64,000 nt of DNA from Hyalangium minutum (GCF_000737315.1 NZ_JMCB01000002.1:670718-734717), one strand, 5' to 3'. Positions 3,990 to 51,631 are shown, counted from the first letter of the stretch. Numbers and translations are program-made. The notes: generated by a model from the letters alone, not told the origin.

Positions 3990-4005
3990 GAGGCGGACAC
4001 GCGCG

Positions 4006-9883: not shown

Positions 9884-9964
9884 GCAGGCGTGGGCGGGTG
9901 AGACGGGCGGAAACATCACCACCGTCTCCCAGTGGATGAAACAACCCCCAGGAAGTGCTTCAGC

Positions 9965-10123: not shown

Positions 10124-10209
10124 CGCGAACTTGAAATAAAACCCCCGCTCCGAAGCAGGCTGATCCTCTAAGTGCCTGAGAGAACTAGAATTCACCCCGT
10201 CGTTGGCAT

Positions 10210-10225
10210 TGGCACGCGGGCTGCT
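10210..10225 (+). promoter_or_regulatory. Sigma54 (-24/-12) promoter
   Basis: TGGCACG-CGGG-CTGCT with exact GG-N10-GC spacing (GG 10211-12, GC 10223-24). Confidence 0.85.
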
Positions 10226-10235
10226 AAGACACTCC

Positions 10236-10356
10236 TCGGGACGCATCGAAGCGAGGCTGAAGGAGGTTCCCCCCCACCCCTTCAGCACTTCCGGTGAGTC
10301 ACTTATGAAGACCCGCGGCCCGGCTCCCTTTTGGGGTGCCGGGCCGCCTTCATTTT
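10236..10356 (+). ncRNA. pxr: Pxr-like small regulatory RNA (ends approximate)
   Basis: Lies between an NtrC-type regulator and a GNAT, as at the M. xanthus pxr locus; sigma54 promoter; hairpin GCTGAAGG...CCTTCAGC with C-rich loop (10256-10286), short middle stem, terminal hairpin GCGGCCCGGC...GCCGGGCCGC (10315-10347) then a T-rich tail. Confidence 0.8.
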
Positions 10357-11898: not shown

Positions 11899-12000
11899 GC
11901 GGAGACTCCTCCCGGGCCAAAGGTGGAGCGCGGGGTGGGCGGCGCAAAGCGCCAGGGGCGCAGGCTCGTCTGCCTGCCCGCAGGGCGGAAGCGAGGGTTG

Positions 12001-12041
12001 AAAAGACGACGCCCGTCCAGGCACGGGGCCAGGACGGGCGT
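12001..12041 (-). terminator. Intrinsic terminator of the nuo operon
   Basis: ACGCCCGTCC...GGACGGGCGT stem followed on the minus strand by CGTCTTTT. Confidence 0.65.
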
Positions 12042-12070
12042 GGGTGAAACGGGACCGGTGGGCGTGGGGA

Positions 12071-13639: not shown

Positions 13640-13654
13640 GGCGGGAGGGGGTCC

Positions 13655-25921: not shown

Positions 25922-28412
<2,491 letters not shown>

Positions 28413-28463
28413 TCAATGATTCTGTGGAGCCCGGCAGGGTTGGCGTGCGTCTGAACGGACGGC

Positions 28464-28697
28464 TCAGGTGCCGTCCTGACCCTTGGGGCGGGAGTGGGCG
28501 TAGTCGCGGGCCTCGGGCTCGCCGACGCGGAAGTCGCGCAACGGACAGTGACGGCAGGTCCACCCGTCCCAGGCGCGCTTCACGGCCAGGTGCAGGCAGC
28601 GGTCGTAGTGGAAACAGAAGAGGTTGCGTTGGGCCTCCACCGCTCCCTCTTCACGGATGGCCGAGGGCAAGGGGGTGGGGCAGGGTGTGATCGGCAC
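28464..28697 (-). CDS. Small Cys/His-rich hypothetical protein (77 aa), possible metal binding
   Basis: GGAG RBS then GTG at 28697; RNLFCFHYDRCL...WDGWTCRHC. Confidence 0.6.
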   Translation of the reverse strand: MPITPCPTPLPSAIREEGAVEAQRNLFCFHYDRCLHLAVKRAWDGWTCRHCPLRDFRVGEPEARDYAHSRPKGQDGT

Positions 28698-28794
28698 GGC
28701 TGGGTTCTCCAGAGAAGTCTTGAGGCTTCCCCCCCGGCTGCAAACAGGTTGAGCGCGTGCACATTCCCGAAACTGGAGTGAGGAGTGGGGACAT

Positions 28795-28857
28795 AAAAAG
28801 GCCCGCTCTCCCCGTGCGCCCCTTTCGGGTACTGCGCGCATGGGAGGGCGGGCCCTC
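28795..28857 (-). terminator. Long GAAA-capped hairpin followed by U5
   Basis: Minus strand GGCCCGC-C-CTCCC-A-TGCGC...CCC-GAAA-GGG-GCGCA-C-GGGAG-A-GCGGGCC-TTTTT. Confidence 0.7.
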
Positions 28858-28884
28858 ACTGCTGGCTCCACATCCGCCGGGTGG

Positions 28885-28947
28885 CTAGTGCGCCATGCCA
28901 GCGGAGGTGGATGCCTGACTGATGTTGGTCAAGGCATCACCTCCTTT
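28885..28947 (-). other. Perfect SD (AAAGGAGGTGAT) plus 15-codon ORF MTNISQASTSAGMAH, SD sequestered in a hairpin
   Basis: SD at 28947-28936, TTG at 28932, TAG ending at 28885; stem 28903-28944. Confidence 0.4.
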
Positions 28948-29009
28948 CGTCTGCGGCACCAGTGTTAATCAAGAGCAGGGTGCGTGCGCTAGTGCTTGAT
29001 GTGGGCAAT

Positions 29010-29868
29010 GTTGGCTGGCGCGCAGGCTGGCTGCTCTCCATCCGGCCGGGCGCATGGGCTCTGGGCGGGCGAGAGGCCCTGCACTCGGCACTCTCTTGCT
29101 CACCCTGCGCGTGAAGCTGTTCGCCCAGCGCGAGGAGATGCCGGTGGACCTCGCGCTCGGAGTTCACGTGGGCCCGTCGGTGGGCAGTGGCATGGCGCTC
29201 GCCCGGGAGCCGCGCGCCCTTCCCAGTCTCATGGTGGGCCGCCAGTTCCACCGTCTGCGCGCTGCTCTCGATGCCGGCCTTCTGTTGCGGCCTCGCACCA
29301 TCCTGAGCCCGGACAAGCACATCCAGGACGAGCTCGATCACGCGCTGCGCCTCGGCGGGACCTTGTCCACCCTGGGCTCCGGTCTGCGCGGAGAGCTGGC
29401 CCTCATGGGCTCGGTGCCCTTGTACCGGGGAGGCGCCTTCATCGAGGCTCTCGCGGGTGCACGTCTTCCCGTGAGTGCCTCGGTCGAGGCGTATGCCATG
29501 GCTGGAGAGGAGGATGCCTGTCCCCTCGTGCCGGGCATCCCCGAGATGCACGGCTGTCCCGCGCAGGACACGGTGCTCGACCACTTGGACAACTGTCCGG
29601 ATGCAGCGGGCCCTCCGGCCAACCAGGGCTGTCCAGAAGAGGAGAAGCAGCTGGTGGCCATCCAAAGAGCTCGCATCGAGATCCGCGACACGGTCCACTT
29701 CAACTTCGACAAGGCCACCATCTCGCCCGGAAAGGCGTGGCCCGCGAGTGCATGGAGGCCCGGGGCTTCGGTGAGGATCGCCCCGTCCAGACCAACGCCA
29801 CCGACGCGGGGCGCGCGGCCAACCGGCGCGTGGACTTCATGACTCGCTACACGCCCTCCGCCCCCTGA
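29010..29868 (+). pseudogene. Decayed beta-barrel/TSP3/OmpA (TraB-like) gene
   Basis: Colinear pieces homologous to 34977-36698 and the 3' part of 36887-41008; lacks start and signal, has at least three internal deletions and a frameshift before GKGVARECMEARGFGEDRP. Confidence 0.85.
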
Positions 29869-30120
29869 TGGAGCGGTAGGGTGTCATCCAGTGGAAGAGA
29901 GGGTCCGCAAGTGTAGGTGCGGTTTCCAGCCATGCTGGACGCACGCCTGCTGATCAGGGGGGCTCCAGGCCAGGACGTGGCAAGCGCACACCAGTTTCGT
30001 AGAATCTGGAAGCCTCTTCGGTTGCGTGGCTGACGGGAGTTCCTTGCTCTGTGCCAGCGTGGCTGCTACCTCCGTACAGGCCTGAAAAATTCTGCCATGC
30101 CTGACGGGGGCTGCGTTCGT

Positions 30121-33100
30121 ATGAAGCTCAAGAGCCTGGTGTTGCTGTTACTGGGAGTCTGGGCGGTCAGTGCCTGCGGCGAGGAGACTCGCGCGCTCGA
30201 GACAGAGCTGTCGCCCGAGGCCGTGGCCACGACGAGCCAAGCTGCCCGCAGCACGGACAAGGTGCTCATCCTCGCCAGCAGCGTCAATGGGGGCATGGAC
30301 AGCCGCGAGGCGCAGGCGGTGCGCACCTACTCGCCGTCCACGGAGATCCACGTCAAAACCCCGGACGAGTGGCGCGCGATGACGGCCCAGCAGTTCATGG
30401 AGTACCGCGCCCTCATCATCGGCGACGCGGCCTGTCAGAGCGGCACGGCCGCGCTCGATGCCGCGGTGGAGTCCCGCAGCCGGTGGGGTGCCATCGTCGA
30501 CAGCAACGTGGTGATCATCAGCTCGGATCCGTCCAGCAACAACACCGATTTCCTGGTGGATAACGCGATCAACTCGGTGGTGGTCGACTCGATCCAGTAC
30601 CGCACCGGCATGTACATCGCGCTGGGCTGCGCGTACCAGAATGCGCCAGCCAACACGGTGGTGACGCTGCTGGAGCCGTTCGGCACCTTCAAGGTGCAGG
30701 GAGTCCCCGGCTGCGCGCGGTCCGCGCACATGTTCCAGATGTCCCCGGTCACCCTGTCGAACGGCGTCTATGACGACGCGCTGATTGGCTTGGGGGAGTG
30801 CGCGGCGCGCTCGGTGTTCACCCAGTACCCGGACCACACCTTCTCGCACGCGGCCATTGCCACGAGGACCAGTGGCCCGCCGCTTCCCGGCGAGAAGGAG
30901 TATCTCGACTACCAGATCGATTGGGGCACGCCGACAGCCTTCCACGGAGCTCCTTATGTCCTGGTGCGCGGCGCCATGGCGTGGAGCGCTGGTTGCGGCG
31001 ATCAGGACAACACCCCCGACGGCGAGCAGTGCGATGCGGGTGACGGCACCAATGGCCAGCCCGCGGGACCTGGACAGAGCCCGGATACGACTTGCTCGTT
31101 CGCTTGCCGCCTCAACTGGTGTGGTGACGGCGCCGTGGATGTGGCGCAGGGCGAGGAGTGCGACAACGGCACCGCCAACGGCCGCACGGGCGACGTGAGC
31201 GGCGACATTGGCGCGTGCACCTCGTTCTGCAAGCGCCCCAATATCGCCCCGCCCAACCGTCCCCCGGTGGCGCTGTGCCGCAACGTGACGGTGTCCGTCT
31301 CGAACACCTGCGGCGCGCCCGCGAACATCAACAACGGCTCCAGTGATCCGGATGGGGACCCGATCACCTGCACGCAGAATCCCGCGGGCCCGTACCCCGT
31401 GGGCCCCACGACGGTGACCCTGACGTGCTCGGACTCCCGAGGGTTCGGCTCTTGCTCGGGGACGGTGATGGTGGCGGACTCCGGGGCGCCGACGGTGACG
31501 ATCGATGGTCCGGCCAGCGAGGCCTTGGAGTGCACGCGCGGCGCCACGTACGCGGAGCTGGGCGCCACGGCGCGAGACCTGTGCGAGGGCGCGCTGCCCG
31601 TGAGCCTGTCCGGCTCGGTGAACATGGGCTCGCCGGCCACTTACACGCTGACCTATACGGCGCGGGACTCGGTTGGCAATCAGGGGTCGGCCTCGCGCAC
31701 GGTGGTGGTGTCCGACACGCTGCCGCCGTCCCTCTCCCTGGTGGGAGCGCCCACGATGGCGCAGGAGTGCGGCGTCGCGTTCACGGATCCCAGCGCCACC
31801 GCCACCGACCAGTGCGCGGGGACGCTGCCTGTCACCGTCAGCGGCACGGTGAATGATCGCGTGCGTGGCCCCTACACGCTGACGTACAGCGCGAACGATG
31901 GGCACGGGCACACGGTGTCCAAGGACCGCATGGTGAGCGTGCGCGACACGCGGGCGCCCGTCGTGACAATCACGGGCCCGCTGGGCGTCAATGTGGAGTG
32001 CGGCGGCCCGTACACGGAGCTGGGCGCCACGGCGAACGACCTGTGCGCCGGGCCGCTGGCGGCGCTGCCGACCAGCGCTCCGGAGCCGGCCGTGGTGGGC
32101 GCCTACCCCATCATCTACCAGGCGGTGGATCCCGACGGGAACGTGGGCACGTCGGTCGACAGCCGCACGGTGAACGTGCGCGACACGTTGAAGCCGGTGC
32201 TGACGCTGACGGGCGCCAATCCGCAGCCGCTGGAGTGCGGCACGGCGTGGTCGAACCCAGGGGCCACGGCCCAGGACCAGTGCGAGGGCCCGCTGACGAA
32301 CCGGATCACGGTGAGCGGCTCGGTGGATCACCAAGCGCCGCGGCAGTACACGGTGACCTACAGCGTGAGCGACAGGTACGGCAATACGGAGACGAAGGAT
32401 CGCGCGGTGAGCGTGCGCGACACGCTGCCGCCCGCCATCACAGTGGTGGGCCCGCTGCAGGACTCGGCCGAGTGCGGCTCGACGTACGTGGATGGTGTGG
32501 TGCAGGCCGAGGACGTCTGCGCCGGAACGCTGCCGGTGACGCGGACGGTGGCGGGAGACACGCGGCGTCCGGGCACGATGACCATCGAGTACTCGGCCAC
32601 CGACCCGTCCGGCAACCAGGCCGTGTCGGCGGACCGCCGCACGGTGTCGGTGGTGGATACGCAGGCCCCGGTGCTGTCGCTGCGCGGCACGGCGAGGCAG
32701 CGGCTGGAGTGCGGCACGGCTTTCACGGACCCGGGCGCGGTGGCCACGGACGTGTGCTTTGGGGACCTCTCGGGCTCGGTCACGCTCGCGGGCAGCGTGG
32801 AGCATGGAGCGGTCGGTGACTACACGCTGCGCTACGATGTGACGGATGGCGCGGGCAACCGCGCGGCGCCGGCTGTCCGCACGGTGGAGGTGCGTGACAC
32901 GCTGCCGCCGGTGCTGACGGTGCTGCCGCCGTTCAACGCGCGCGTGCAGTGTGATCATCAGCAGTTCCAGGACCCCGGCGCCACGGCGAGCGACGTGTGC
33001 GCGCTGGACCTGACCGGCTCCATCCAGAGGCAGGGCCTGGTGGACACGGGCCTGCCGGGCACCTACTCGCTGAGCTACCGCGTGGTGGACCCGTCCGGCA

Positions 33101-34980
33101 ACGAGGCCACGGCCAACGCGGCGCGCTCGGTGTCGGTGGTGGATGACCTGCCGCCCACCCTTGAGCTGGTGGGTGCGGCCACCGAGAACGTGGAGTGCGG
33201 CGCGGCCTATACCGAGCAGGGCGTCCGGGCCACCGACCTGTGCTTCGGCGACCTGTCCGACCGCATCGTGCGCGTGGGCCAGGTGGACTCCGCCGTGCCG
33301 AGCGACTACTCCATCGTCTACAGCGTGACCGACCCGTCCAACAACACGGCGAGCACGCAGCGCATGGTGAAGGTGCGCGACACGCTGAAGCCGGTGCTGA
33401 CGCTGACGGGCGCCAATCCGCAGCCGCTGGAGTGCGGCACGGCGTGGGTGAGCCCGGGCGCCACGGCCCATGACCAGTGCGCGGGGCCGCTGACGGCTCA
33501 GATCTCCGTCACGGGGACGGTGGATCATCAGGTGCCGGACCAGTACACGGTGACCTACAGCGTGAGCGATGGACGCGGCAACACGGAGATGCAGGAGCGC
33601 GCGGTGAGCGTGCGCGACACGCTGCCGCCCGCCATCACGGTGGTGGGCCCGCTGCAGGACTCGGCCGAGTGCGGCTCGACGTACGTGGACGGTGCGGTGA
33701 GGGCCGAGGACGTCTGCGCCGGGACGCTGCCAGTGACGCGGACGATCAACGGAGACACGCTGCGTCCGGGCACGATGACCATCGCGTACTCGGCGACGGA
33801 TCCCTCGGGCAATCAGGCCGTGGCGGCGGATCGCCGCACGGTGTCGGTGGTGGACACGCAGGCGCCGGTGCTGTCGCTGCGCGGCACGGCGACGCAGCGG
33901 CTGGAGTGTGGCACGGCCTTCACGGAACCGGGCGCGGTGGCCATGGACGTGTGCTTCGGGGACATCTCGAGCTCGATCACGCAGACGGGCAGCGTGGACC
34001 CTGGCGCCGTGGGCGACTACACGGTGCGCTACGAGGTGACGGACGGCGCGGGCAACCGGGCGACGGCCGCGAGCCGCATGGTGCAGGTGCGCGACACGCT
34101 GCCTCCGACGCTGACGGTGCTGCCGCCGTTCAACACGCGCGTGCAGTGTGACCATCAGGCATTCCAAGATCCCGGCGCCACGGCAAGCGACGTGTGCGCG
34201 CTGGACCTGACGGGCTCCATCCAGCGGCAGGGCTTGGTGGACACGGGCCTGCCGGGCACCTACTCGCTGAGCTACCGCGTGGTGGACCCGTCCGGCAACG
34301 AGGCCACGGCCTCCACGGCGCGCTCGGTGTCGGTGGTGGATGACCTGCCGCCCACCCTTGAGCTGGTGGGTGCGGCCACCGAGAACGTGGAGTGCGGCGC
34401 GGCGTACGTCGAGGCGGGCGTGAAGGCCACCGACCTGTGCTTCGGCGACCTGTCTGACCGCGTCACGCGCGTCGGCGAGGTGAACCCCGCCAAGCCGGGC
34501 GACTACCCCATCGTCTACAGCGTGACCGACCCGTCCAACAACACGGCGACCACGCGGCGCGATGTGGCGGTGAAGGACACGACGCCCCCCACCATCGTCT
34601 GCCCCGACCCCATCGTCGTCGAGGTCCAGCCGGGGATGCAGGCGGACCTCACGCCGGCTGCCGCCCGGGCTACGGACGTGTGCTCTCAGGCGCAGGTGAG
34701 CATCCCCGTGCAGAAGCGCTTCCCGGTGGGCGACACGCAGCTCACGTACACGGCGACGGACGAGGCGGGCAACACCGCCAGCTGCACCACGACCGTCACC
34801 GTTCGTGAGCTCAAGGTGCCGGACCCGGTGCCCGAGCCTCCCAAGCCCGGCCCGTTCGACCGCGCCCTGCTGGGTGGCGGAAGCGGTTGCTCCTCGACGT
34901 CCGGTGGGCCATCGTCGCTGGCGATGATGGGACTCGGAGTGCTCGCGGCCCTCCTGGCCCGGAGAGCCCGGAGGCAATGA
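30121..34980 (+). CDS. Large surface protein: lipobox, globular head, Cys-rich myxobacterial repeat, Ig-like domain, 13 DUF5011-like repeats, HYR-like domain, MYXO-CTERM
   Basis: MKLKSLVLLLLGVWAVSAC; WCGDGAVD..GEECDNG; repeats EC..x..DPGATAxDxC...YxxxDxxGN; C-terminal GGGSGCSSTSGG-TM-RRARRQ. Confidence 0.88.
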   Translation: MKLKSLVLLLLGVWAVSACGEETRALETELSPEAVATTSQAARSTDKVLILASSVNGGMDSREAQAVRTYSPSTEIHVKTPDEWRAMTAQQFMEYRALIIGDAACQSGTAALDAAVESRSRWGAIVDSNVVIISSDPSSNNTDFLVDNAINSVVVDSIQYRTGMYIALGCAYQNAPANTVVTLLEPFGTFKVQGVPGCARSAHMFQMSPVTLSNGVYDDALIGLGECAARSVFTQYPDHTFSHAAIATRTSGPPLPGEKEYLDYQIDWGTPTAFHGAPYVLVRGAMAWSAGCGDQDNTPDGEQCDAGDGTNGQPAGPGQSPDTTCSFACRLNWCGDGAVDVAQGEECDNGTANGRTGDVSGDIGACTSFCKRPNIAPPNRPPVALCRNVTVSVSNTCGAPANINNGSSDPDGDPITCTQNPAGPYPVGPTTVTLTCSDSRGFGSCSGTVMVADSGAPTVTIDGPASEALECTRGATYAELGATARDLCEGALPVSLSGSVNMGSPATYTLTYTARDSVGNQGSASRTVVVSDTLPPSLSLVGAPTMAQECGVAFTDPSATATDQCAGTLPVTVSGTVNDRVRGPYTLTYSANDGHGHTVSKDRMVSVRDTRAPVVTITGPLGVNVECGGPYTELGATANDLCAGPLAALPTSAPEPAVVGAYPIIYQAVDPDGNVGTSVDSRTVNVRDTLKPVLTLTGANPQPLECGTAWSNPGATAQDQCEGPLTNRITVSGSVDHQAPRQYTVTYSVSDRYGNTETKDRAVSVRDTLPPAITVVGPLQDSAECGSTYVDGVVQAEDVCAGTLPVTRTVAGDTRRPGTMTIEYSATDPSGNQAVSADRRTVSVVDTQAPVLSLRGTARQRLECGTAFTDPGAVATDVCFGDLSGSVTLAGSVEHGAVGDYTLRYDVTDGAGNRAAPAVRTVEVRDTLPPVLTVLPPFNARVQCDHQQFQDPGATASDVCALDLTGSIQRQGLVDTGLPGTYSLSYRVVDPSGNEATANAARSVSVVDDLPPTLELVGAATENVECGAAYTEQGVRATDLCFGDLSDRIVRVGQVDSAVPSDYSIVYSVTDPSNNTASTQRMVKVRDTLKPVLTLTGANPQPLECGTAWVSPGATAHDQCAGPLTAQISVTGTVDHQVPDQYTVTYSVSDGRGNTEMQERAVSVRDTLPPAITVVGPLQDSAECGSTYVDGAVRAEDVCAGTLPVTRTINGDTLRPGTMTIAYSATDPSGNQAVAADRRTVSVVDTQAPVLSLRGTATQRLECGTAFTEPGAVAMDVCFGDISSSITQTGSVDPGAVGDYTVRYEVTDGAGNRATAASRMVQVRDTLPPTLTVLPPFNTRVQCDHQAFQDPGATASDVCALDLTGSIQRQGLVDTGLPGTYSLSYRVVDPSGNEATASTARSVSVVDDLPPTLELVGAATENVECGAAYVEAGVKATDLCFGDLSDRVTRVGEVNPAKPGDYPIVYSVTDPSNNTATTRRDVAVKDTTPPTIVCPDPIVVEVQPGMQADLTPAAARATDVCSQAQVSIPVQKRFPVGDTQLTYTATDEAGNTASCTTTVTVRELKVPDPVPEPPKPGPFDRALLGGGSGCSSTSGGPSSLAMMGLGVLAALLARRARRQ
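32176..34569 (+). repeat. Tandem duplication of a 1197-bp block (five Ig-like repeats) inside the surface protein
   Basis: GTGCGCGACACG(T/C)TGAAGCCGGTGCTGACGCTGACGGGCGCCAATCCGCAGCCGCTGGAGTGC recurs at 32176 and 33373, with long near-identical stretches. Confidence 0.9.
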
Positions 34981-36698
34981 TGGGGTGGGCAGGGCTCGCA
35001 GCGATGCGAGCGCGGAAGCGTGTGCAACCAGGTTTGCTGGTCGTGGCCCTCGTGTTTCTGAGCGCCACGGCCTTCGCCCAGCCCGAGGGTGTGCCCACCT
35101 TCGAACTGGAGCTCCTCAAGCTCAACCCTGGCGCCGTGGGCTCCCTGTTGGTGGGCACCGGCGAGCCGCTTCCCGACGGCGACTACCGCTTCTCCCTCGC
35201 TGTCCACTACGAGAACGATCCGCTCCTGCTCTTCGAGAACGGCAAGCAGCTCGGCGCGGTGGTGCGGCACCGGGCCACGACGCACCTGACCGCCGCCTAC
35301 GGTCTGTTTGGATGGCTGGAGGTGGGCGCCCAGCTCCCCGTGGTGCTCATCCAGCGCGGCGATGACCTGACGGACCTGGGCGTGAGCGGGCTCTCGGGAG
35401 GTCCGGCGGTCGGCACCCCGCTGCTCACGGTGCAAGGCCAGTTGCTCTCCCAGGCCAAGAAGGATCACCTGGTGGACCTCGCGCTGGGCCTCCACATGGG
35501 GTTGCCCATCGGCAGCTCCGCGGCGCTTTCCCGGGAGCTGCGGGCCATTCCCAGCCTCATGGTGGGCCGCACCGGTGAGTCCCTCCGCGGCGCCCTCGAG
35601 GTCGGCATGCTGCTGCGCCCTCGCACCGTGCTGACCCAGGACGAGAACGTGCAGGATGAGCTCGGGCATGCGATGCGCTTCACCGGAGGGCTGTCCAGCC
35701 TCGGGCCCCGCCTGCGCGGAGAGCTAGCCCTCAGCACCCTGGTCCCCCTCAAGCGTCAGGGACTCTCCATTGAGGTGCTGGGGGGCGCCCGCTGGCCCGT
35801 GAAGGAGGCCTTCGAGGCGTTCGCTCTGGCGGGCCTGGGCTTTGGCAACGCCCCGGGCACCCCGGACTTCCGCATTCTGCTCGGCATGGCGTACGGCCGC
35901 CCGCGTCCCGCTGCGGTCGAAGTGGCTCCTCCCGTGAAGGAGCCGGAGCCCCCGCCTCCGCCAAAGGACACGGATGGCGACGGCGTCGTGGACGGCGAGG
36001 ACGCGTGTCCGGCGGCCACGGGCAAGCTGGGCATGAAGGGCTGCCCAGATGAGGACAATGACGGTATCGAGGATGGCGGAGACATGTGCCCCACCGAGGC
36101 CGGGCCGGCGGAGCGTCAGGGTTGCCCGCCGAAGGACTCGGATGGCGATGGCGCGCTGGACGAGGTGGACAACTGTCCCACCGAGCCCGGGCCGCTCGAC
36201 CACAGTGGCTGCCCGCCCGCGGACCGCGACAACGACACGGTCGAGGACCTGTCCGACAACTGCCCCGACGAGTTCGGCCCGCCGGACAACCAGGGCTGCC
36301 CGCCGGAGGAGAAGCAGCTGGTCGTCATCCAGCGAGACCGCATCAAGATCAACGACACGGTCTACTTCGACTTCGACAAGGCGACGATCCAGCCGCGCTC
36401 GTTCCCGCTGCTGGACCAGGTGGCGAAGGTCATCCTCGAGCACCCAGAGATCGTCTCGGTGAGCGTCGAAGGCCACACGGACGACTCGGGGCCCGCCGAA
36501 TACAACCGGGGCCTGTCGCAGCGGCGCTCGGAGGCGGTGCGTGACTACCTCATCGGCAAGGGCGTGGCGCCTGAGCGTCTGGAGGCCAAGGGCTACGGTG
36601 AGGATCGCCCCATCGCCTCCAACGCCACCACCGCCGGGCGAGCAACCAACCGTCGCGTGGAGTTCATCACTCGATACTCGGCCTCGGGTGGACAGTAG
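34977..36698 (+). CDS. Outer-membrane beta-barrel + four TSP3 repeats + OmpA domain protein (TraB-like architecture)
   Basis: Signal peptide ...SATAFA-Q; DxDxDGxxDxxDxCP x4; FDFDKATI, EGHTD, LSQRRSEAVR and NRRVEF; ATGA overlap with the upstream gene. Confidence 0.9.
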   Translation: MMGWAGLAAMRARKRVQPGLLVVALVFLSATAFAQPEGVPTFELELLKLNPGAVGSLLVGTGEPLPDGDYRFSLAVHYENDPLLLFENGKQLGAVVRHRATTHLTAAYGLFGWLEVGAQLPVVLIQRGDDLTDLGVSGLSGGPAVGTPLLTVQGQLLSQAKKDHLVDLALGLHMGLPIGSSAALSRELRAIPSLMVGRTGESLRGALEVGMLLRPRTVLTQDENVQDELGHAMRFTGGLSSLGPRLRGELALSTLVPLKRQGLSIEVLGGARWPVKEAFEAFALAGLGFGNAPGTPDFRILLGMAYGRPRPAAVEVAPPVKEPEPPPPPKDTDGDGVVDGEDACPAATGKLGMKGCPDEDNDGIEDGGDMCPTEAGPAERQGCPPKDSDGDGALDEVDNCPTEPGPLDHSGCPPADRDNDTVEDLSDNCPDEFGPPDNQGCPPEEKQLVVIQRDRIKINDTVYFDFDKATIQPRSFPLLDQVAKVILEHPEIVSVSVEGHTDDSGPAEYNRGLSQRRSEAVRDYLIGKGVAPERLEAKGYGEDRPIASNATTAGRATNRRVEFITRYSASGGQ

Positions 36699-36886: not shown

Positions 36887-39800
36887 GTGAAGCTCAAGAG
36901 CCTTGGGGCGTTGTTGGTGTTGGCATGGGTGGCCAGTTCCTGCGGTGAAGAGGTGAAAGAGCCGGGGAGCGACCTCTCGCCGGAGAGGGTGCGTGACACA
37001 CGCCAGGGGGCCCGCAGTACCAATAAGGTTCTGATCCTGGACAGCAGCGTGAGCAGTGGGAACGGGAGCCGCGAGGCCCGCGCCCTCAGGCACCTGGATT
37101 CCAGTGTCCAGATCGATGTGAAGACTCCCGCGGAGTGGCGCGCGATGACGGCCGAGCAGTTCATGGCGTACCGCGCCCTCATCATTGGCGACGGGGCCTG
37201 CCAGAGCGGCACGGCCGCGTTCGACGCCGCGGTGGAGACCCGCGCCAGGTGGGGCGCCATCGTCGACAGCAACGTGGTGCTCATCAGCTCGGACCCATCC
37301 CACAACCGCACCGAGCAGCTCCTGGAGAACGCGCTCAAGTTCGTTCTCGTGGACTCGATCCAGTACCGCACCGGCATGTACATCGCGCTGGGCTGCGCGT
37401 ACCAGAACGCGCCGGCCAACACAGCGGTGGACCTGCTGGAGCCGTTCGGCGCCTTCTCGGTGCAGGGCGTGCCGGGCTGCGCGTCCACGGGTCACATCTT
37501 CCAGATGTCCCCCGTGACGCTGTCCGATGGCCTCACGGATGGCTCGCTGGAGGGTGACGGGTGCGTGGCGCGCTCGGTGTTCACGAGCTATCCGCGCAAC
37601 ACCTTTGCGTTCGCGGCCATCGCGACCGGCACGGAGAGCACGCCGCTCCCCGGCCAGCAGACGCACATCGACTATTGGTACGAGCCGGGCGCGGAGACTC
37701 CCTTTATGGGCACGCCCTTCGTCCTCGTGCGCGGCGCCATGGCGACGAGCGCCGGTTGCGGCGGTGACTCCAACAACGTTCCGTCCGAGGAGCAGTGCGA
37801 CATGGGCGACGTCTACAACGGTCAGCCCAACACCGGTGGCCAGAATCCAAGCGCGACCTGCTCGTTCTCCTGCCGCCTCCACTGGTGCGGTGACGGCGCC
37901 GTGGACGAAGGCGAGGAGTGCGACGCCGGCAGCAACAACGGCCGCTCGGGCGATGCGGACGGCGACATCGGCGCGTGCACCTCGTTCTGCAAGATTCCCA
38001 ACATCCCGCTGCCCAACCGGCCTCCGGTGGCGCGGTGCCGGGACGTGACGGTGGCCGCGACGAACACCTGCGACCGCCCGGCCGACATCAACAACGGCTC
38101 CAGTGACCCGGATGGCGATGACATCGAGTGCACGCAGAACTCAGCCGGCCCGTACACCATCGGCAGCCACACGGTGACCCTGACCTGCACGGACCCGTCG
38201 GGCGACATGGGCATGTGCACGGCCACGGTGACGGTGACGGACTCGGTGGCGCCGGTGGTGACCCTCTTTGGCCCCGCCAGCGAGACGCTGGAGTGCGTGC
38301 GCGGCGTCACGTATGAGGACCCAGGAGCTTCGGCGAGTGATCTGTGCGAGGGCGCGATGCCTGTCACGGTCTCTGGCTCGGTGAACCTGGCGAGCCCCCG
38401 GGGCTACCCGCTGACCTATACGGCCCGGGACGCGTCCGGCAACACGGGCTCGGCCACGCGCACGATCTCCGTCGCGGACACGAAGGCGCCGGTCATCACT
38501 GTGACGGGCTCGGACCGCCTGTCGCACGAGTGCGGCACGCCGTTCATTGACCCGGGTGCCACGGCGAGCGACGTGTGCGCCGGCACGGTGCCCGTCACCG
38601 CGACGCAGTCGGGCAGCTTGAGCCAGCCGGGCACCTTCACCATCTCCTACGCGGCGGTGGATCCGTCGGGCAACCGCACCACCTCGCCCACCGTGCGCAC
38701 GGTGATGGTGACCGATGACACCCCGCCCACGCTGGTGCTGCTGGGCTCGGACAAGCAGTCGTACGAGTGCGGCACGCCCTTCGTCGACCCGGGCGCCAAG
38801 GCCAGCGATCTCTGCGCCGGGGACCTGAGCGGCCAGATTGTCCGCACCGGCTCCGTGGACACCGCCAAGCTGGGCTCCTACACGATCCAGTACTCCGTGA
38901 CGGATCCGTCCCAGCACACGGTGACGGCGAGCCGCCAGGTGTCCGTGAAGGACACGACGCCTCCCAACATCCTGTGCCCCGAGCCCATCGTCGTCGACCT
39001 GAAGGAGGGCGCGCTGGTCAACGTGACGCCGGGGGCGGCGAAGGCCACGGACTCGTGCTCCGAGGCCCGGGTGATCACCCCCACGCAGGCGAGCTTCCCG
39101 CTGGGCACCACGCCCGTGACGTACACGGCGACGGACGAAGCGGGGAACACCGCGAGCTGCACCACGACCATCACCGTGCGCGAGCTCTCGGGGCCGGGCA
39201 CCCCGTCCGAGCCTCCCGGCCGCGGACCCTTCGACCGCGCGCTGATGGGCGGCGGCAACGGGTGCTCCTCCACCAGCAGCGGCCCCTCGTCGCTGGCGGT
39301 GATGGCGCTGGGCCTGTTCGCGGCCCTGGCGTTCCGGAAGCGCACGCAGAAGCGCGGGCTCGCCGTGGCGACGGTGCTCGTGGCGGCCACGGCCACGGCC
39401 CAGGTCGCGGGCGTGCCGACCTTCGATCTGGAGCTGCTCAAGCTGAACCCCAGCGCCAAGGGCTCGCTGCTGCTCGGCACGGGCGAGCTGATGGACCCGG
39501 GTGACTACCGCTTCTCGCTCACCACGCACTACCAGAAGGATCCGCTCGTCCTCTATGAGAACGGCACGGAGATGGGCGTGTTGGTGCGGCATCGCGCCAC
39601 GGCCCACTTGGCCGCCGCGTACGGCGTGAACAAGTGGCTGGAGGTGGGAGCCCAGTTGCCCGTGGTGTTTCTTCAGCGCGGCGATGACCTGACGGGCATG
39701 GGCGTCGGCCAGCCCAAGGGGGGCGTCGCGGCCGGCACGCCGCTGTTCAACGTGCAGTTCAAGCTGCTCTCCCAGCGCGAGGACGACATGGTGGACCTCT

Positions 39801-41008
39801 CGGTGGGGATGCAGGCAGGGCCGCCGATCGGGAGCGCCTCGGCGCTGGCCCAGGAGACGCGCGCCACGCCCAGCCTCATGGTGGGCCACACCTTCCCCTC
39901 GCTGCGCGCGGCGATCGACGCGGGCATGCTGCTGCGGCCTCGCACGGTGCTGACGCAGGATGAGAACGTCCAGGACGAGCTCGGCCATGCGGTGCGCCTG
40001 GGCGGCATGGTCTCCTCGCTCGGCGAGGGCCTGCGCGGTGAGCTCGCCCTCAACACGCTGGTGCCGCTCAAGCGCCAGGGCTTCTCCGTCGAGATGCTGT
40101 CGGGTGCACGCTGGCCGCTGAGCGAGACGGTGGAGGCGTACGGCATGGGCGGCGTGGGCTTCGGCTCCGCGCCGGGCACTCCGGACTTCCGCGTGCTCTT
40201 CGGCGTCGCCTACGGCCGTGCGCGGCCCGCCAAGGTCGAGCTCGCCAAGTACGAGCCGGAACCCGCGCCGAAGGACTCGGATGAGGACGGCATCCTGGAT
40301 GACGCGGATCGCTGCCCGAACGTCGTGGGCCTGCCCGGCTTCCAGGGCTGCCCGGACCGGGATGGCGATGGCCTGGAGGATGAGGCGGATCAGTGCCCAG
40401 CCGAGCCGGGAGCGGTGGAGCGCCGGGGCTGCCCGCAGAAGGACACGGACGGTGATGGCCTCGTGGACGAGGAGGACGCCTGTCCGACCGAGCCGGGCCC
40501 CGTGGAGCGCCAGGGCTGCCCCATCCGGGATCGCGACAATGACACGGTGGAGGACCGCGAGGACAACTGCCCGGATGAGTTCGGTTCGCCGGACAACCAG
40601 GGCTGCCCGCCGGAGGAGAAGCAGCTGGTCGTCATTCAGCACGACCGCATCAAGATCAATGACACGATCTACTTCAACTTCGACAAGGCGACGATCCAGC
40701 CGCGCTCGTTCCCGCTGCTGAACCAGGTGGCGCGCGTCATCCTCGAGCACCCGGAGATCATCTCGGTGAGCGTGGAGGGCCACACGGACGGCCAGGGCTC
40801 CGCCGATTACAACCGGGGCCTGTCGCAGCGGCGCTCGGAGGCGGTGAGGGCCTACCTCATCAGCAAGGGTGTGGACGCCGAGCGTCTGGAGGCCAAGGGC
40901 TACGGTGAGGATCGCCCCATCGCCTCCAACGCCACCAACGCGGGCCGCGCGGCCAACCGCCGAGTGGAGTTCATCACCCGCTACGGCGTGCAGGAGGGGA
41001 AGCAGTAG
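36887..41008 (+). CDS. Fused surface protein: lipobox, head, Cys-rich repeat, Ig-like, 3 DUF5011-like repeats, HYR, internal MYXO-CTERM, second signal-like segment, beta-barrel, TSP3 x4, OmpA
   Basis: N-half paralogous to 30121-34980 and C-half to 34977-36698, one uninterrupted frame; junction GGGNGCSSTSSG-TM-RKRTQKRGLAVATVLVAATATAQ. Confidence 0.88.
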   Translation: MKLKSLGALLVLAWVASSCGEEVKEPGSDLSPERVRDTRQGARSTNKVLILDSSVSSGNGSREARALRHLDSSVQIDVKTPAEWRAMTAEQFMAYRALIIGDGACQSGTAAFDAAVETRARWGAIVDSNVVLISSDPSHNRTEQLLENALKFVLVDSIQYRTGMYIALGCAYQNAPANTAVDLLEPFGAFSVQGVPGCASTGHIFQMSPVTLSDGLTDGSLEGDGCVARSVFTSYPRNTFAFAAIATGTESTPLPGQQTHIDYWYEPGAETPFMGTPFVLVRGAMATSAGCGGDSNNVPSEEQCDMGDVYNGQPNTGGQNPSATCSFSCRLHWCGDGAVDEGEECDAGSNNGRSGDADGDIGACTSFCKIPNIPLPNRPPVARCRDVTVAATNTCDRPADINNGSSDPDGDDIECTQNSAGPYTIGSHTVTLTCTDPSGDMGMCTATVTVTDSVAPVVTLFGPASETLECVRGVTYEDPGASASDLCEGAMPVTVSGSVNLASPRGYPLTYTARDASGNTGSATRTISVADTKAPVITVTGSDRLSHECGTPFIDPGATASDVCAGTVPVTATQSGSLSQPGTFTISYAAVDPSGNRTTSPTVRTVMVTDDTPPTLVLLGSDKQSYECGTPFVDPGAKASDLCAGDLSGQIVRTGSVDTAKLGSYTIQYSVTDPSQHTVTASRQVSVKDTTPPNILCPEPIVVDLKEGALVNVTPGAAKATDSCSEARVITPTQASFPLGTTPVTYTATDEAGNTASCTTTITVRELSGPGTPSEPPGRGPFDRALMGGGNGCSSTSSGPSSLAVMALGLFAALAFRKRTQKRGLAVATVLVAATATAQVAGVPTFDLELLKLNPSAKGSLLLGTGELMDPGDYRFSLTTHYQKDPLVLYENGTEMGVLVRHRATAHLAAAYGVNKWLEVGAQLPVVFLQRGDDLTGMGVGQPKGGVAAGTPLFNVQFKLLSQREDDMVDLSVGMQAGPPIGSASALAQETRATPSLMVGHTFPSLRAAIDAGMLLRPRTVLTQDENVQDELGHAVRLGGMVSSLGEGLRGELALNTLVPLKRQGFSVEMLSGARWPLSETVEAYGMGGVGFGSAPGTPDFRVLFGVAYGRARPAKVELAKYEPEPAPKDSDEDGILDDADRCPNVVGLPGFQGCPDRDGDGLEDEADQCPAEPGAVERRGCPQKDTDGDGLVDEEDACPTEPGPVERQGCPIRDRDNDTVEDREDNCPDEFGSPDNQGCPPEEKQLVVIQHDRIKINDTIYFNFDKATIQPRSFPLLNQVARVILEHPEIISVSVEGHTDGQGSADYNRGLSQRRSEAVRAYLISKGVDAERLEAKGYGEDRPIASNATNAGRAANRRVEFITRYGVQEGKQ

Positions 41009-41022
41009 CAGGCAGGGGTGGG

Positions 41023-41048
41023 GGCCTGGGCCCTTCGGGGCTCAGGCC
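41023..41048. terminator. Bidirectional UUCG-capped hairpin
   Basis: GGCCTGGGCCC-TTCG-GGGCTCAGGCC between convergent genes. Confidence 0.65.
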
Positions 41049-42814
41049 GCCACGAACTGCCGCTCCACCAGCCGGCGGTACAGGCCGTCCTGGCCCATCA
41101 GCGCGGAGTGGCTGCCGCTCTGGACGATCTTCCCGCCCTCCAGCACCATCACCCGGTCCGCATCCATCACCGTGGAGAGCCGGTGGGCGATGATGAGCGT
41201 GGTGCGGCCCTTCATCAGCCGGTCCAGCGCTTCCTTCACCAGGTGCTCGCTCTCGGCGTCGAGCGCGCTGGTGGCCTCATCAAGGATGAGCAGGCGCGGA
41301 TCCTTCAGCATCGCTCGGGCGATGGCCACGCGCTGCTTCTGGCCGCCCGACAGCTGCACGCCGCGCTCGCCCACCAGCGTGTTGTAGCCCTCGGGGAAGC
41401 GCATGATGAAGTCGTGCGCGTTGGCCGCCTTGGCCGCCGCTTCAATCTCTGCCTGGGTGGCGTCCGCCCGGCCGTAGCGGATGTTGTCCGCGATGGAAGA
41501 GGAGAACAGCAGCGGCTCCTGGGCCACCACGCCGATCTGCTGACGCAGCCACTCCGGGTCCAGCGCCTTCAGGTCCTTGCCGTCCAGGAGAATGTGGCCG
41601 CCCTGCGGGTCATAGAGCCGCCCCAGCAGCGAGGCGATGGTGGACTTGCCCGAGCCCGAGGGACCGACGATGGCCACCGCCTCGCCGGGCTCGATGTTCA
41701 GCTCGATGCCCTGGAGCACCGGCACGTCCGGGCGCGAGGGGTAGGTGAAGCGCACGTCCTGCAGCTGCACGCGGCCCTCGGTGTGGGCAAGGCGCTCGCC
41801 GCCCGACATGGGAATGGTGGGCTGGCGATCCATCAGCTCGAAGACGCGCTCGGAGGCGCCGGCGGCCCGCATGAAGTCCGCCCACAGCTCGGTCAGCGCG
41901 CCCAGCGCGAACGCGACGAACATCGAATAGACGAGGAAGGACGTCAGCCCGCCCACGGTCAGCGAGCCATCCACCACCAGCCGCCCGCCGTACCAGAACA
42001 CGGCCGCCGCGGCTGCGAAGCCGCAGAAGGAAGCCACCGCCATGAAGGTGGAGGACTGGCGGATGCGTCTGCGCGCCAGCTCGAAGGCCCTGTCCACCGC
42101 GGAGCGGTAGCGGGCCACCTCGCTCTTCTCCGCCGCGAAGGAGCGCACCGTGCGCACCCCCGAGAGGCTCTCCTCGGCCACCTCATTGGAGTTGGCCAGC
42201 GCGTCCTGCACCTCCTTGGAGAGCTTGCGCACCCCGCGCCCGTAGAACACCGCGCCCACAGCCACCGGAGGAACCACCGCCAGCATCACCAGGGTGAGCG
42301 CCGGGGAGGTGTAGAAGAGCATCGCGATGCCGCCCAGGGCCTGCACCCCGTTGCGCAGCACCATGGAGATGTTGGCGCTCACGGTGTTCTGCAGCACCGT
42401 GGTGTCCGAGGCCAGCCGGTTGGTGAGCTCTCCCGTCTTACGCTCGTCGAAGAAGGCCACCTCCTGGGACATGAGGCTGGAGAACAGCTTCTGCCGCAGC
42501 CGCGTCACCACGCGCTCGCCGGCCGTGGTGAAGAAGTAGTAGCGCAGCGCCACGGCCACGGACTGGATGGCGAAGATGACCGCCATCCCCAGCGCGATCT
42601 GATCGATCATCGCGCGATCCCTCGCGCCCAGCGCCTCGTCGATGATCTGCCGCATCTTCTGCGGGTACAGCAGGCTCATGCCGCTACCGACGACGAGGAA
42701 GAAGGTGCCCGCGATGAGGGTGCGGGTTTCCGGGCGCGCCAGGCTCAACAGCCGGCGCAGCGTCACCTTCTGGGAAACACGAGACTTGGAGGGCTTGGCG
42801 GGGGGCTTTTCCAC
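41042..42814 (-). CDS. ABC exporter, fused TMD-NBD (ABCB/MsbA/MdlB-like), no peptidase domain
   Basis: GPSGSGKS, LSGGQKQR and ILDEATSALD; start taken at GTG 42814. Confidence 0.93.
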   Translation of the reverse strand: MEKPPAKPSKSRVSQKVTLRRLLSLARPETRTLIAGTFFLVVGSGMSLLYPQKMRQIIDEALGARDRAMIDQIALGMAVIFAIQSVAVALRYYFFTTAGERVVTRLRQKLFSSLMSQEVAFFDERKTGELTNRLASDTTVLQNTVSANISMVLRNGVQALGGIAMLFYTSPALTLVMLAVVPPVAVGAVFYGRGVRKLSKEVQDALANSNEVAEESLSGVRTVRSFAAEKSEVARYRSAVDRAFELARRRIRQSSTFMAVASFCGFAAAAAVFWYGGRLVVDGSLTVGGLTSFLVYSMFVAFALGALTELWADFMRAAGASERVFELMDRQPTIPMSGGERLAHTEGRVQLQDVRFTYPSRPDVPVLQGIELNIEPGEAVAIVGPSGSGKSTIASLLGRLYDPQGGHILLDGKDLKALDPEWLRQQIGVVAQEPLLFSSSIADNIRYGRADATQAEIEAAAKAANAHDFIMRFPEGYNTLVGERGVQLSGGQKQRVAIARAMLKDPRLLILDEATSALDAESEHLVKEALDRLMKGRTTLIIAHRLSTVMDADRVMVLEGGKIVQSGSHSALMGQDGLYRRLVERQFVAA

Positions 42815-43968: not shown

Positions 43969-47991
<4,023 letters not shown>

Positions 47992-48003: not shown

Positions 48004-49164
48004 TCAGCCCTCGATTCCATAGAACCGGGCGGGGTTGTCCCAGAGGAGCTTGCGCATCGTCTCCTCGGGCAGCACCGAGCGCAGCTCCATCACGTGGTCC
48101 ACGATGTCCTCCCCGTGGTCCGTGTGTGGGTAGTCGGTGCCGAACACCAGGTTGTCCGTGCCGATCATCCGGATGAGCTCCTGGAGGCCCGGCTCGCCGG
48201 GCTCGATGGCGACGACGCAGTGGCGGCGGAAGTACTCCGAGGGCTTCATGCGGACGTTCTCCGACACCTCGCCCTTCATGTACTCGTAGGTGGAGTCCAT
48301 GCGCCACAACCAGTAGGGCAGCCACCCGCAGCCGGACTCGAAGAAGCCGATGCGCAGGCGCGGGTGGCGCTCCAGCACGCCACCCTCGAGGAGGGAGGCG
48401 AGGGCCAACATGGCCTCCAGCGGGTGCGAGGCGGCGTTGTGGGCGAAGCGGGTGGTGAAGCGCTCCGCGCCCGCTGAGGGCAGCCGCACATTGGAGCCCT
48501 CGTGGAGGGCCACACCGATGGAGTGGCGCTCGCAGGCGGCCCAGAAGGGCTCGTAGGCGGGGTGGCCGAGTGTTCGGCCATTCACGGGGTTGGGAGGGAC
48601 GGCCACGGCCTTCCAGCCAAAGCGGGCCAGGCGCTCCACCTCGCCCGGCAGCACCTCGGGCTCGTGCAGACACAGGGCGCCTACGGCCCGGAGGCGCTGA
48701 GGGTTCGCGCTGCAGAAGTCGCGCAGCCACGCATTGTAGGCGCGGGCGAAGGCAGTGGCCCGGGTGGGCTCCATGCCGTCGATGCGCAGAATGAACAGGG
48801 CCATGGTGGGGAAGAAGCAGGCGGCATCCATCCCCGTCTGATCCATGGTCCGCAGGTGGTGCGAGGGGCTGACGGTGGACTCATAGGCCACGGTCCGCTG
48901 CGCGGCGGCCCAGGCCATCTCCACCTGGGTCCGCTCGGAGAGCCGCTGCCACGCGGGCTGCCCATCGATCATCAACGTGGGAGTGATGGGCAGCATCCCC
49001 TTGGGCCCCAGCCGCGCCACACGCTGCTCCAGTGTCTCCTCGGGAGCGATGAGTTGTTCGTAGGGGGCGCCCGCCCGGTACTCGGGGGGCAAATACTCCT
49101 TCCACATCTCGATGGGCTCAATGACATGGCGGTCCGAGTCCACCATCCGCAGTCCTTCACGCAT
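48004..49164 (-). CDS. Amidohydrolase_2 family metalloenzyme
   Basis: VDSDRHVIEP, ALHEG, FFESGCGW and FGTDYPHTD; 8 nt after the YcaO gene. Confidence 0.88.
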   Translation of the reverse strand: MREGLRMVDSDRHVIEPIEMWKEYLPPEYRAGAPYEQLIAPEETLEQRVARLGPKGMLPITPTLMIDGQPAWQRLSERTQVEMAWAAAQRTVAYESTVSPSHHLRTMDQTGMDAACFFPTMALFILRIDGMEPTRATAFARAYNAWLRDFCSANPQRLRAVGALCLHEPEVLPGEVERLARFGWKAVAVPPNPVNGRTLGHPAYEPFWAACERHSIGVALHEGSNVRLPSAGAERFTTRFAHNAASHPLEAMLALASLLEGGVLERHPRLRIGFFESGCGWLPYWLWRMDSTYEYMKGEVSENVRMKPSEYFRRHCVVAIEPGEPGLQELIRMIGTDNLVFGTDYPHTDHGEDIVDHVMELRSVLPEETMRKLLWDNPARFYGIEG

Positions 49165-49172
49165 GGGAGCAC

Positions 49173-51383: not shown

Positions 51384-51631
51384 GGTCAGTTTTGAACTTT
51401 AGCACTGAATAGCGCCTGGGCTCTTGGGGGTCAGCTCAGACCCGCGTGGAGCGGCGGCGAATTTTCAGCTGGCTTTGAATTCGTGAAAGGAATGAAGGCA
51501 AGGAATTGCGTCTTTACTCGGGTCGAGTCAAAGCATGACAAGTGAAATGTTAGTTTTTGATGAGACATTGTGTTAATAAAAGGGCGGCCGCCAGCATTAC
51601 CCCCAGCGGCCGCTTGAAAGAGAGGGACGTC

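Follow-up and report, generated by a model that had tools for sequence, protein, structure and literature searches.

For kin recognition and contact-dependent fusion of outer membranes, TraAB is, to our knowledge, the only bacterial machine that has been characterised. Its two genes, traA and traB, overlap by four bases, and TraA carries a type I signal peptide (PMC3325183). TraB is composed of a beta-barrel at its N-terminus, followed by TSP3 repeats and an OmpA-like domain; TraA and TraB pair at a ratio of 1:1, and AlphaFold sets the base of TraA on the barrel (PMC12045341). When the OmpA domain of TraB is deleted, adhesion is kept and exchange is lost (PMC8651087); thus the anchor half matters mechanically in TraAB. 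A protein encoded by a single gene was compared to TraA plus TraB by Guo et al. (2025, mBio; PMC11980579). This protein, MXAN_5598 of Myxococcus xanthus, has an internal MYXO-CTERM tag, for which gene fusion followed by processing was proposed, and it has been seen in outer-membrane-vesicle proteomics (PMC4158809).

Herein, we describe a locus of Hyalangium minutum that follows the TraAB design. The window (the whole 64-kb stretch of DNA that was analysed; coordinates are window positions, G+C is 66-72%, and features lie on the plus strand unless stated otherwise) holds a small tandem array of TraAB-like two-part envelope modules, placed between pyrG/kdsA and an ABC transporter. The array consists of a B-like pseudogene (29060-29859), the gene pair A and B (30121-34980 and 34977-36698), and a paralogous module in one reading frame, A'B' (36887-41008). 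An earlier note, made from the sequence of the window, had singled out the A-B pair as a TraAB-like surface module with a head other than that of TraA, and had read it as an apparently undescribed adhesion or recognition system. Pfam and NCBIfam confirmed the MYXO-CTERM protein with its Cys-rich repeat and long stalk of immunoglobulin-like (Ig) domains, as well as the barrel/TSP3/OmpA partner, and the coupling of the two genes by an ATGA overlap is present; the fused paralogue, the pseudogene and an N-terminal lipobox in A go beyond that description. The module is TraAB-like in design but is not TraAB, and its most likely function, at a probability of about 0.6, is that of a surface adhesin in complex with a wall anchor. 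Loci and proteins retrieved from other genomes are designated below by the prefixes L and P.

Genes A and B were delimited by reading frames with high G+C content at third codon positions (GC3). Gene B encodes a TraB-family outer-membrane protein of 573 aa (Pfam, NCBIfam model NF033763), which begins with a type I signal peptide (AFA|Q35) and continues with a barrel (residues ~36-340), TSP3 repeats (~330-455) and an OmpA-like domain (463-559). Pfam recognised TSP_3 repeats in B, and the OmpA domain (PF00691) scored 80.8 bits in B and 79.8 bits in A'B', against a cut-off of 27.2. The N-terminal domain has no Pfam name; PF13557 is matched by distant relatives of B, and no such Pfam match was found in B or A'B'. 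The full length of B scored 268.3 bits on NF033763 (exchanger_TraB), which was also the sole NCBIfam match of the barrel alone (74 bits, E 5e-21, model positions 52-337); the barrel of B' alone scored 46.8 bits. Ten other members of the B family scored 146-275 bits on the same model, two of them aligning over model positions 55-500. Since 268 bits falls short of the curated cut-off of 700 bits, B is, as judged by these profiles, not TraB but a TraB-family homologue in a paralogous clade. At least 88 homologues of B exist, and no source gives the name TraB to any of the ~200 homologues retrieved, which are labelled 'OmpA family protein'. B resembles TraB in its signal peptide, outer-membrane barrel, TSP3 repeats and OmpA-like domain, with homology over the barrel and the C-terminal part. 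The match of gene order and partner architecture to traA-traB, which the earlier note had pointed out, is therefore supported by the sole barrel match to NF033763, by the published architecture (PMC12045341) and by the gene overlap (PMC3325183).

Gene A encodes a stalked MYXO-CTERM surface protein of 1619 aa (GC3 0.90; translation, Pfam and NCBIfam), with orthologues in L003, L005, L006, L007, L009 and L010; its start at 30121 (MKLKS) is common to them. The signal peptide (30121-30177) ends in the lipobox V-S-A-C (Cys19), as read from the translation, and this lipobox is kept in A', L003, L005, L006, P0001-P0007 and the closest representatives of the head family. A linker of ~25 residues joins the lipobox to the head domain (residues ~46-297; 30256-31011), and two units of Cys-rich repeats of the DUF4215 or myxococcal disulphide-repeat type, likewise assigned by eye, come next (residues ~298-388; 31012-31284). 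The DUF4215 match on A is weak (E 0.094), and it is significant in the relatives P0009, P0116 and P0175. The stalk (31255-34572) comprises Big_9 and then 13 Ig-like domains of PF16403 (Bact_surface_Ig-like; Pfam, E 5e-178), seen at the DNA level as direct repeats with a period of 237 nt, and is followed by a membrane-proximal HYR domain (PF02494, E 6.6e-28; residues 1485-1561; 34573-34803). Within the stalk, a repeat search revealed the duplication of a five-domain block (32164-34557; 2 x 1197 nt, ~87% identical), and it is largely because of this duplication that A has 1619 aa while its L003 orthologue has 1061 aa. The spacings of 237 nt and 1197 nt came from a repeat-family search; Tandem Repeats Finder was blind to the stalk repeats because their period exceeds 500 nt. 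The C-terminus of A reads GGGSGCSSTSGGPSSLAMMGLGVLAALLARRARRQ and forms a full tripartite MYXO-CTERM (34873-34977), with a Cys-containing signature (GGGSGC), a transmembrane helix and an Arg-rich basic tail (ARRARRQ); it scored 22.9 bits on TIGR03901 (cut-off 20) and 18.4 bits on TIGR03382 (cut-off 15.85). The stop codon of A and the start codon of B share the ATGA at 34977-34980. This overlap is preserved in two related genomes, L003 and L007, which argues that it is not due to chance; in L005, L006, L009 and L010 the junction is a gap of 70-120 nt.

The overlap of four bases is common to this pair and to traA/traB (MXAN_6895/MXAN_6898), and the upstream product resembles TraA in being stalked, in having Cys-rich repeats and in ending with MYXO-CTERM. 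The differences from TraA are several. The head of A is an unnamed alpha/beta domain and not PA14-like, and A carries a lipoprotein signal peptide. The stalk of TraA is a Cys-rich rod, whereas that of A-type proteins is mainly made of 3-13 PF16403 Ig-like domains plus HYR; in A itself, the Cys-rich content amounts to two DUF4215-type repeats and the bulk to 13 PF16403 domains plus HYR. In addition, the head of TraA is hypervariable while that of A is conserved, as judged here on a single orthologue pair and the family alignment. Finally, the module in the window is duplicated in tandem, with one copy fused.

The fused copy, A'B', is a single open reading frame (ORF) of 1373 aa (translation, Pfam). 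It encodes, in this order, a lipobox signal peptide, head, Cys-rich repeats, Big_9, three Ig domains, HYR, an internal MYXO-CTERM, the B' signal peptide, barrel, TSP3 and OmpA. The internal MYXO-CTERM (residues 788-823) is complete, with signature Cys, hydrophobic helix and basic cluster, and directly after it come a second hydrophobic segment, the cleavage motif AxA|Q and the N-terminus of mature B'. The fusion junction (39248-39403) reads ...GGGNGCSSTSSGPSSLAVMALGLFAALAFRKRTQKR-GLAVATVLVAATATA|Q-VAGVPTFDLELLKLNP... before the barrel, TSP3 and OmpA, and its elements are a GGGNGC signature, a transmembrane helix, the basic cluster FRKRTQKR, the second hydrophobic segment and the motif ATA|Q. 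In our reading, this junction would form a helical hairpin and be cleaved on either side of it. An AlphaFold2 (AF2) model of residues 690-1135 contained two helices (the MYXO-CTERM helix and the B' signal sequence), a disordered linker and a 12-strand barrel (39404-40270) with a predicted local distance difference test (pLDDT) above 90; the barrel of B is represented by this model of its paralogue. In Foldseek, the B' barrel was closest to FapF (5o65, E 1.2e-9, template-modelling score TMt 0.63) and to a COG4313 channel (4rl8, E 8e-8), with TMt of 0.6-0.68 overall. These PF13557-type barrels share the 12 strands and are its best structural neighbours, in keeping with the PF13557 matches of distant B relatives, but FapF has neither a TSP3/OmpA extension nor a lipid-anchored surface partner, and B is without a significant PF13557 match.

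A sequencing frameshift or assembly error as the origin of A'B' was rejected, because an ORF of the same 1373 aa occurs in independent ENA and JGI assemblies (L003, L004) and because purifying selection acts on the whole of A'B': a comparison of the window with L003 gave a synonymous divergence dS of 0.33 and a ratio of nonsynonymous to synonymous divergence (dN/dS) of 0.35, no segment reaching 1. Two Hyalangium metagenome-assembled genomes (MAGs) likewise contain fused ORFs in which the same signals are preserved, with 1221 aa in L007 and 2753 aa in L008. When the junctions of four genomes were aligned, every sorting signal was retained, and AxA|Q was found in all four fusions, as the hairpin model predicts. 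P0014 is a contig-truncated fragment across a fusion junction, and among head-bearing proteins there are at least three fused cluster representatives less than 50% identical (P0099, P0100 and P0106).

The fused design has one published precedent, MXAN_5598, for which an internal tag was likewise proposed to be processed (PMC11980579). Both are single ORFs with an adhesin region, an internal MYXO-CTERM, an outer-membrane barrel and OmpA, a likeness matched by description and not by sequence. MXAN_5598 sits in the ftsA/ftsZ cluster, while A'B' lies between pyrG/kdsA and the ABC transporter; moreover, fused and unfused forms stand side by side here, so that the junction can be compared with the overlapping-gene state. 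The word 'undescribed' in the earlier note thus holds in part: the fusion had been anticipated, but our literature search found no account of TraB paralogues as a family, of their varied MYXO-CTERM pairing, of the head domain or of tandem fused and unfused copies.

The third TraB-family gene of the array is a remnant, detected by tblastn of B against the window. It aligns in two frames to B residues 137-362, 396-477 and 523-570 (E 1e-45, 2e-26 and 2e-15), is frameshifted, and has lost its first ~136 residues and internal stretches. It was not found at the syntenic loci L003 and L002, and it indicates module turnover within the array. Given the pseudogene, the fused module and the duplication of the stalk block, the array is labile: it gains, loses, fuses and resizes its modules.

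To survey the linkage of B-type barrels, one genome per GTDB species was scanned with an alignment of seven barrel sequences, an alignment of 12 sequences being too diverse for the scan. The scan returned 44 loci, often several per genome, from Hyalangium, Archangium, Cystobacter, Vitiosangium, Pyxidicoccus, Myxococcus and related MAGs. Partner genes were found by GC3-filtered gene calls combined with blastp and tblastn; naive stop-to-stop ORFs in these high-GC loci gave spurious off-frame upstream genes, and tblastn recovered some genes of ~2 kb that the GC3 gene caller had missed. A stalked MYXO-CTERM-type gene was directly adjacent on the same strand, or fused, in 37 of the 44 loci. With fusions in several genomes besides, the two genes can hardly be called rarely linked, which the earlier note had named as a refuting outcome; in this survey, which was ascertained through B, the partnership with a stalked MYXO-CTERM-type protein of one head type or another is strongly conserved.

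Two arrangements account for the 37 loci. An A-type gene, with the same head, Cys-rich repeats, PF16403 stalk and MYXO-CTERM, was directly 5' of B or fused to it in four loci (L007-L010), and the same was seen in L003-L006, which were fetched separately. The reverse order, with B followed by another stalked protein (650-2059 aa), was found in 33/44 loci. This C-type partner has a conserved head of ~450 aa without a Pfam match, a variable set of Big_13/Big_6 repeats and a type I signal peptide; the full-length copies inspected end in MYXO-CTERM, while some others are cut by contig ends or known by tblastn alone. C-type modules (Archangium, Cystobacter, Vitiosangium, Pyxidicoccus, Myxococcus) resemble the A-B module in having a B-family barrel-TSP3-OmpA protein, 40-51% identical to B, that is coupled to a stalked MYXO-CTERM protein with a variable number of Ig domains. 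They differ in having B first, another head, a Big_13/Big_6 stalk and a type I signal peptide. By BLAST, C-type proteins showed no similarity to A, except for the last Ig domain before MYXO-CTERM in some A-type proteins (L005, L008).

Several side observations concern the C-type genes and the outlying loci. C-type genes among L012-L045 lie immediately 3' of B (for example L019:11812-13782 and L012:11819-16081), carry from 1 to at least 9 Big_13/Big_6 repeats, and have in their N-terminal region of ~450 aa the motif 'EPDSFGLGTGRNG...VINSYA...GDLVMVLQTTG'. Some A-type proteins (L005:9502-9924, L008:6247-6636) end in the last Ig domain of the C-type ('RARD..G.VDPTPA..W.V') and not in HYR; the domain next to MYXO-CTERM thus appears to have been exchanged between the A-type and C-type partner families. 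As for the remaining seven of the 44 loci, L033 is at a contig end and L047 truncated; L044 and L050 lie beside genes like those of the type VI secretion system (T6SS), with a C-type gene close by though not directly next to B; and L038, L042 and L048 have similar neighbourhoods with no clear C-type gene. There, distant B-like genes (38-44% identity) adjoin TssM-, TssL/DotU-, TssK-, PAAR- and TssB/C-like genes (L038, L042, L044 and L050 at ~3300-9900; L048 at ~5900-15400), a judgement made on N-terminal sequences alone. Part of the B family may therefore be T6SS-associated wall anchors.

The head of A belongs to no named family: it had no Pfam match at E<=10, PA14 included, and no sequence match in the Protein Data Bank (PDB) by profile search. 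Using an alignment of 11 sequences, the best AF2 model reached a pLDDT of 80.5 and a predicted template-modelling (TM) score of 0.84, the other four models scoring 50-60; in it, the N-terminal half is alpha/beta and the C-terminal half beta-rich. The expectation that the head is not of the PA14 type found in TraA is thus upheld by both the Pfam search and the model. Against the PDB, Foldseek returned nothing better than E 0.06 and TM <= 0.3, and the weak neighbours were flavodoxin-like or class I glutamine-amidotransferase-like (ThuA-like 4jqs, gamma-glutamyl peptidase 9k7l, peptidase E). The model weakly suggests a flavodoxin-like alpha/beta fold, with nothing more specific assigned. A profile search of 1.84 billion cluster representatives gave 1478 head-bearing proteins at E<=1e-3, of which 567 reached E<=1e-30; among the named members sampled are Chloroflexota, Polyangiaceae and Deltaproteobacteria MAGs, making the family cross-phylum. 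In relatives, the head occurs together with DUF4215, Kelch, GDSL-lipase and Ig domains. The lipobox is common to the closest, myxobacterial-type head proteins, and distant ones carry ordinary signal peptides.

Over 147 diverse head representatives, C105, C170, C198, C227, H203, D102, D136, D218, S61, E63, W84 and W122 were conserved at 90% or more, the Cys, His, Asp, Ser and Glu positions at 90-99%. Such a pattern points to a binding or catalytic site plus disulphides rather than to a hypervariable surface for recognition. Within this genome, the paralogous heads of A and A' are 69% identical. As a separate observation, in P0102, P0105, P0108 and P0113 close relatives of the head are joined to another conserved C-terminal domain ('GGIDQHG.LYNF...GNAEGH..PL.DR..C') and not to MYXO-CTERM; the head is thus found with more than one type of C-terminal region.

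Evolutionary rates were calculated between the window and the syntenic locus L003, that is, on one orthologue pair. The response regulator was 100% identical, KdsA 97%, CTP synthase 96% (dN/dS 0.13), B 87% (0.16) and A'B' 82% (0.35). The fastest-evolving gene of the neighbourhood was A, with 60% identity by BLASTP, 75% over globally aligned codons, and a dN/dS of 0.43. The head was no outlier relative to the stalk: its dN/dS values were 0.50, the one for A, and 0.32, and head identity between orthologues was 70-78%. The HYR domain of A had a dN/dS of 1.19, on 78 codons only. Surface proteins usually evolve fast.

Upon the domain anatomy, the homology to TraB, the conserved linkage, the signal-bearing fusions and the purifying selection described above, an adhesin plus wall anchor can be modelled, with localisation, processing, physical A-B contact and adhesive function following by analogy from work on TraAB and MYXO-CTERM proteins (PMC11980579, PMC12045341, PMC8651087). 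In this model, A would be exported by Sec and acylated at the lipobox Cys19. The MYXO-CTERM helix would hold A in the inner membrane until lipidation at the MYXO-CTERM Cys, cleavage by myxosortase and passage to the surface via the T2SS (type II secretion system). B would form a 12-strand outer-membrane barrel, followed by a calcium-binding TSP3 linker and an OmpA-like domain that would grip peptidoglycan. The base of A, namely HYR and the conserved linker before the lipidated Cys, would dock on the barrel of B at 1:1. The length-variable Ig stalk and the conserved ligand-binding or catalytic head would thereby be coupled mechanically to the wall, and force on the head would pass to the wall. 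In the case of A'B', a single precursor would be made, in which the MYXO-CTERM helix (periplasm to cytoplasm), the cytoplasmic basic cluster and the B' signal (cytoplasm to periplasm) would form an inner-membrane hairpin. Cleavage by myxosortase and signal peptidase I on either side of this hairpin would then yield equimolar A' and B'.

Several points weigh against this model. The sequence signals of A predict a lipid anchor at each end, at the lipobox Cys19 and at the MYXO-CTERM Cys, an arrangement that sets A apart from TraA, is at odds with a simple head-on-stalk adhesin and makes the picture of a head at the stalk tip uncertain; A may arch over the surface between its two anchors, or the N-terminal one may serve some other purpose. 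The head gives no hint of a ligand in the Foldseek, PDB sequence and Pfam searches. In the single case inspected (L001), a head protein without MYXO-CTERM was not linked to a B gene, and the linkage survey was itself ascertained through B. The AF2 model was made on the natural A'B' fusion, in which the barrel is confident, and it speaks to the barrel, not to A-B contacts. The modelled B' barrel, moreover, is most like the channel and transporter barrels FapF and COG4313, which leaves room for a role in transport.

If the module were a second system of kin recognition and outer-membrane exchange, homotypic binding between heads would be followed by outer-membrane fusion, as in TraAB. The homology of B to TraB, with the same architecture in the same overlapping operon, is what this reading would lead one to expect, as is the faster evolution of A (dN/dS 0.43, and 60% identity by BLASTP) relative to B (0.16 and 87%) and the flanking CTP synthase (0.13). 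A long protein with a lipid anchor at each end could, in principle, also bridge two membranes. The head, however, speaks against this reading. It is conserved among more than 1,400 cluster representatives, including those of Chloroflexota and other non-myxobacterial MAGs; its Cys, His, Asp, Ser and Glu positions are nearly invariant; and its dN/dS (0.50 and 0.32) does not show variability like that of the TraA variable domain, the two heads within one genome still being 69% identical. In addition, forward screens in M. xanthus, as they are cited in PMC12045341, found TraAB alone to be needed for exchange. We therefore regard a second exchange system as unlikely, and a TraA-like recognition role, one of the two roles offered in the earlier note, is not favoured by a head conserved across phyla with a dN/dS of 0.5.

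The barrel raises a different question, namely whether B is an export or threading channel for A, in the manner of two-partner or FapF-like secretion, and not merely an anchor. In the structure search, the polypeptide transporter FapF and the COG4313 channel came out closest to the barrel (E 1e-9 to 1e-7, TMt 0.6-0.68), distant relatives of B match PF13557, and the tight gene coupling and the fusions would suit a channel and its substrate. On the other hand, MYXO-CTERM proteins, TraA included, are reported to reach the surface via the T2SS after myxosortase cleavage (PMC11980579). A 12-strand barrel is narrow, while A consists of many folded, disulphide-containing Ig domains, and the topology of the fusion would put each half in the periplasm independently. 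An export channel for A is accordingly rather improbable.

To an equally low degree, we would credit a head that is an enzyme on a stalk, for instance a hydrolase with a Cys/His/Asp-type site, acting in predation or surface remodelling rather than adhesion. Ten polar or Cys positions (S61, E63, D102, D136, C105, C170, C198, C227, H203 and D218) show at least 90% conservation over the 147 representatives, the flavodoxin-like N-terminal half has weak class I glutamine-amidotransferase-like neighbours (4jqs, 9k7l, peptidase E), and relatives pair the head with GDSL lipase, Kelch and other extracellular modules. Yet no structural match to the head was significant (best E 0.06, TM <= 0.3), only one of five AF2 models was confident, and the four conserved Cys may be just the two disulphides of an extracellular domain. 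An enzymatic head would, in any case, be compatible with the adhesin and wall-anchor model and does not exclude it. As for an incidental adjacency, in which a generic adhesin lies beside a generic OmpA-family protein and the long downstream ORF is an artefact, it served as the null hypothesis alone; nothing was found in its favour, and it is scarcely credible against linkage in 37/44 loci over Hyalangium, Archangium, Cystobacter, Vitiosangium, Pyxidicoccus and Myxococcus, an identical 1373-aa fused ORF in independent ENA and JGI assemblies that is under purifying selection throughout, and further fusions in L007, L008, P0014, P0099, P0100 and P0106.

The TraB-type barrel/TSP3/OmpA protein belongs to a family whose partner, adjacent or fused, is nearly always a stalked MYXO-CTERM protein, with heads that vary. 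From this, the anchor half would seem to serve lipid-anchored surface proteins at large as an adaptor and not to be a specialised exchange factor; the sequences compared show the two-part design of barrel plus surface protein reused with different heads. The unfused and fused copies standing side by side are a natural experiment on the processing of internal MYXO-CTERM tags and on the importance of a 1:1 supply. The extracellular domain family to which the head belongs is large, has a conserved polar site and deserves a name. More speculatively, and with little confidence, TraB-family barrels and stalked MYXO-CTERM proteins could make up a modular 'surface receptor plus wall anchor' class in Myxococcota with at least three unrelated heads (TraA PA14, alpha/beta and C-type). 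Some of its non-TraA modules, possibly the doubly anchored one, would mediate TraA-independent cell-cell coupling or membrane exchange, and A'B' would be a polyprotein cut by two membrane proteases.

The regions around the array yielded a few further features. A GC-rich hairpin at 41012-41060, 3' of the A'B' stop (-40.8 kcal/mol, z = -5.5, by strand folding), is likely a terminator shared with the convergent ABC-transporter gene; a hairpin 3' of the B stop was no better than shuffled sequence (z = -1.4). A consensus scan found no terminator and one weak promoter-like site only (29977-30005), and the 1.9 kb 5' of A had no Rfam match. From the CTP synthase start to the pseudogene, a stretch of ~680 nt (28380-29050) has 85-88% DNA identity to L003 and L002; its only content is a short Cys-rich ORF, on the minus strand at 28464-28871, and it again has no Rfam match. 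On the minus strand at 48004-51398, a gene with a YcaO cyclodehydratase domain (49173-51398) and a neighbouring 415-aa ORF may be a small cluster of the ribosomally synthesised and post-translationally modified peptide (RiPP) type, with no relation to the modules. A large signalling protein at 43969-47991 combines a Ser/Thr kinase with adenylate/guanylate cyclase, AAA_16 and TPR domains, and it is kept 3' of the array in L003 and L004.

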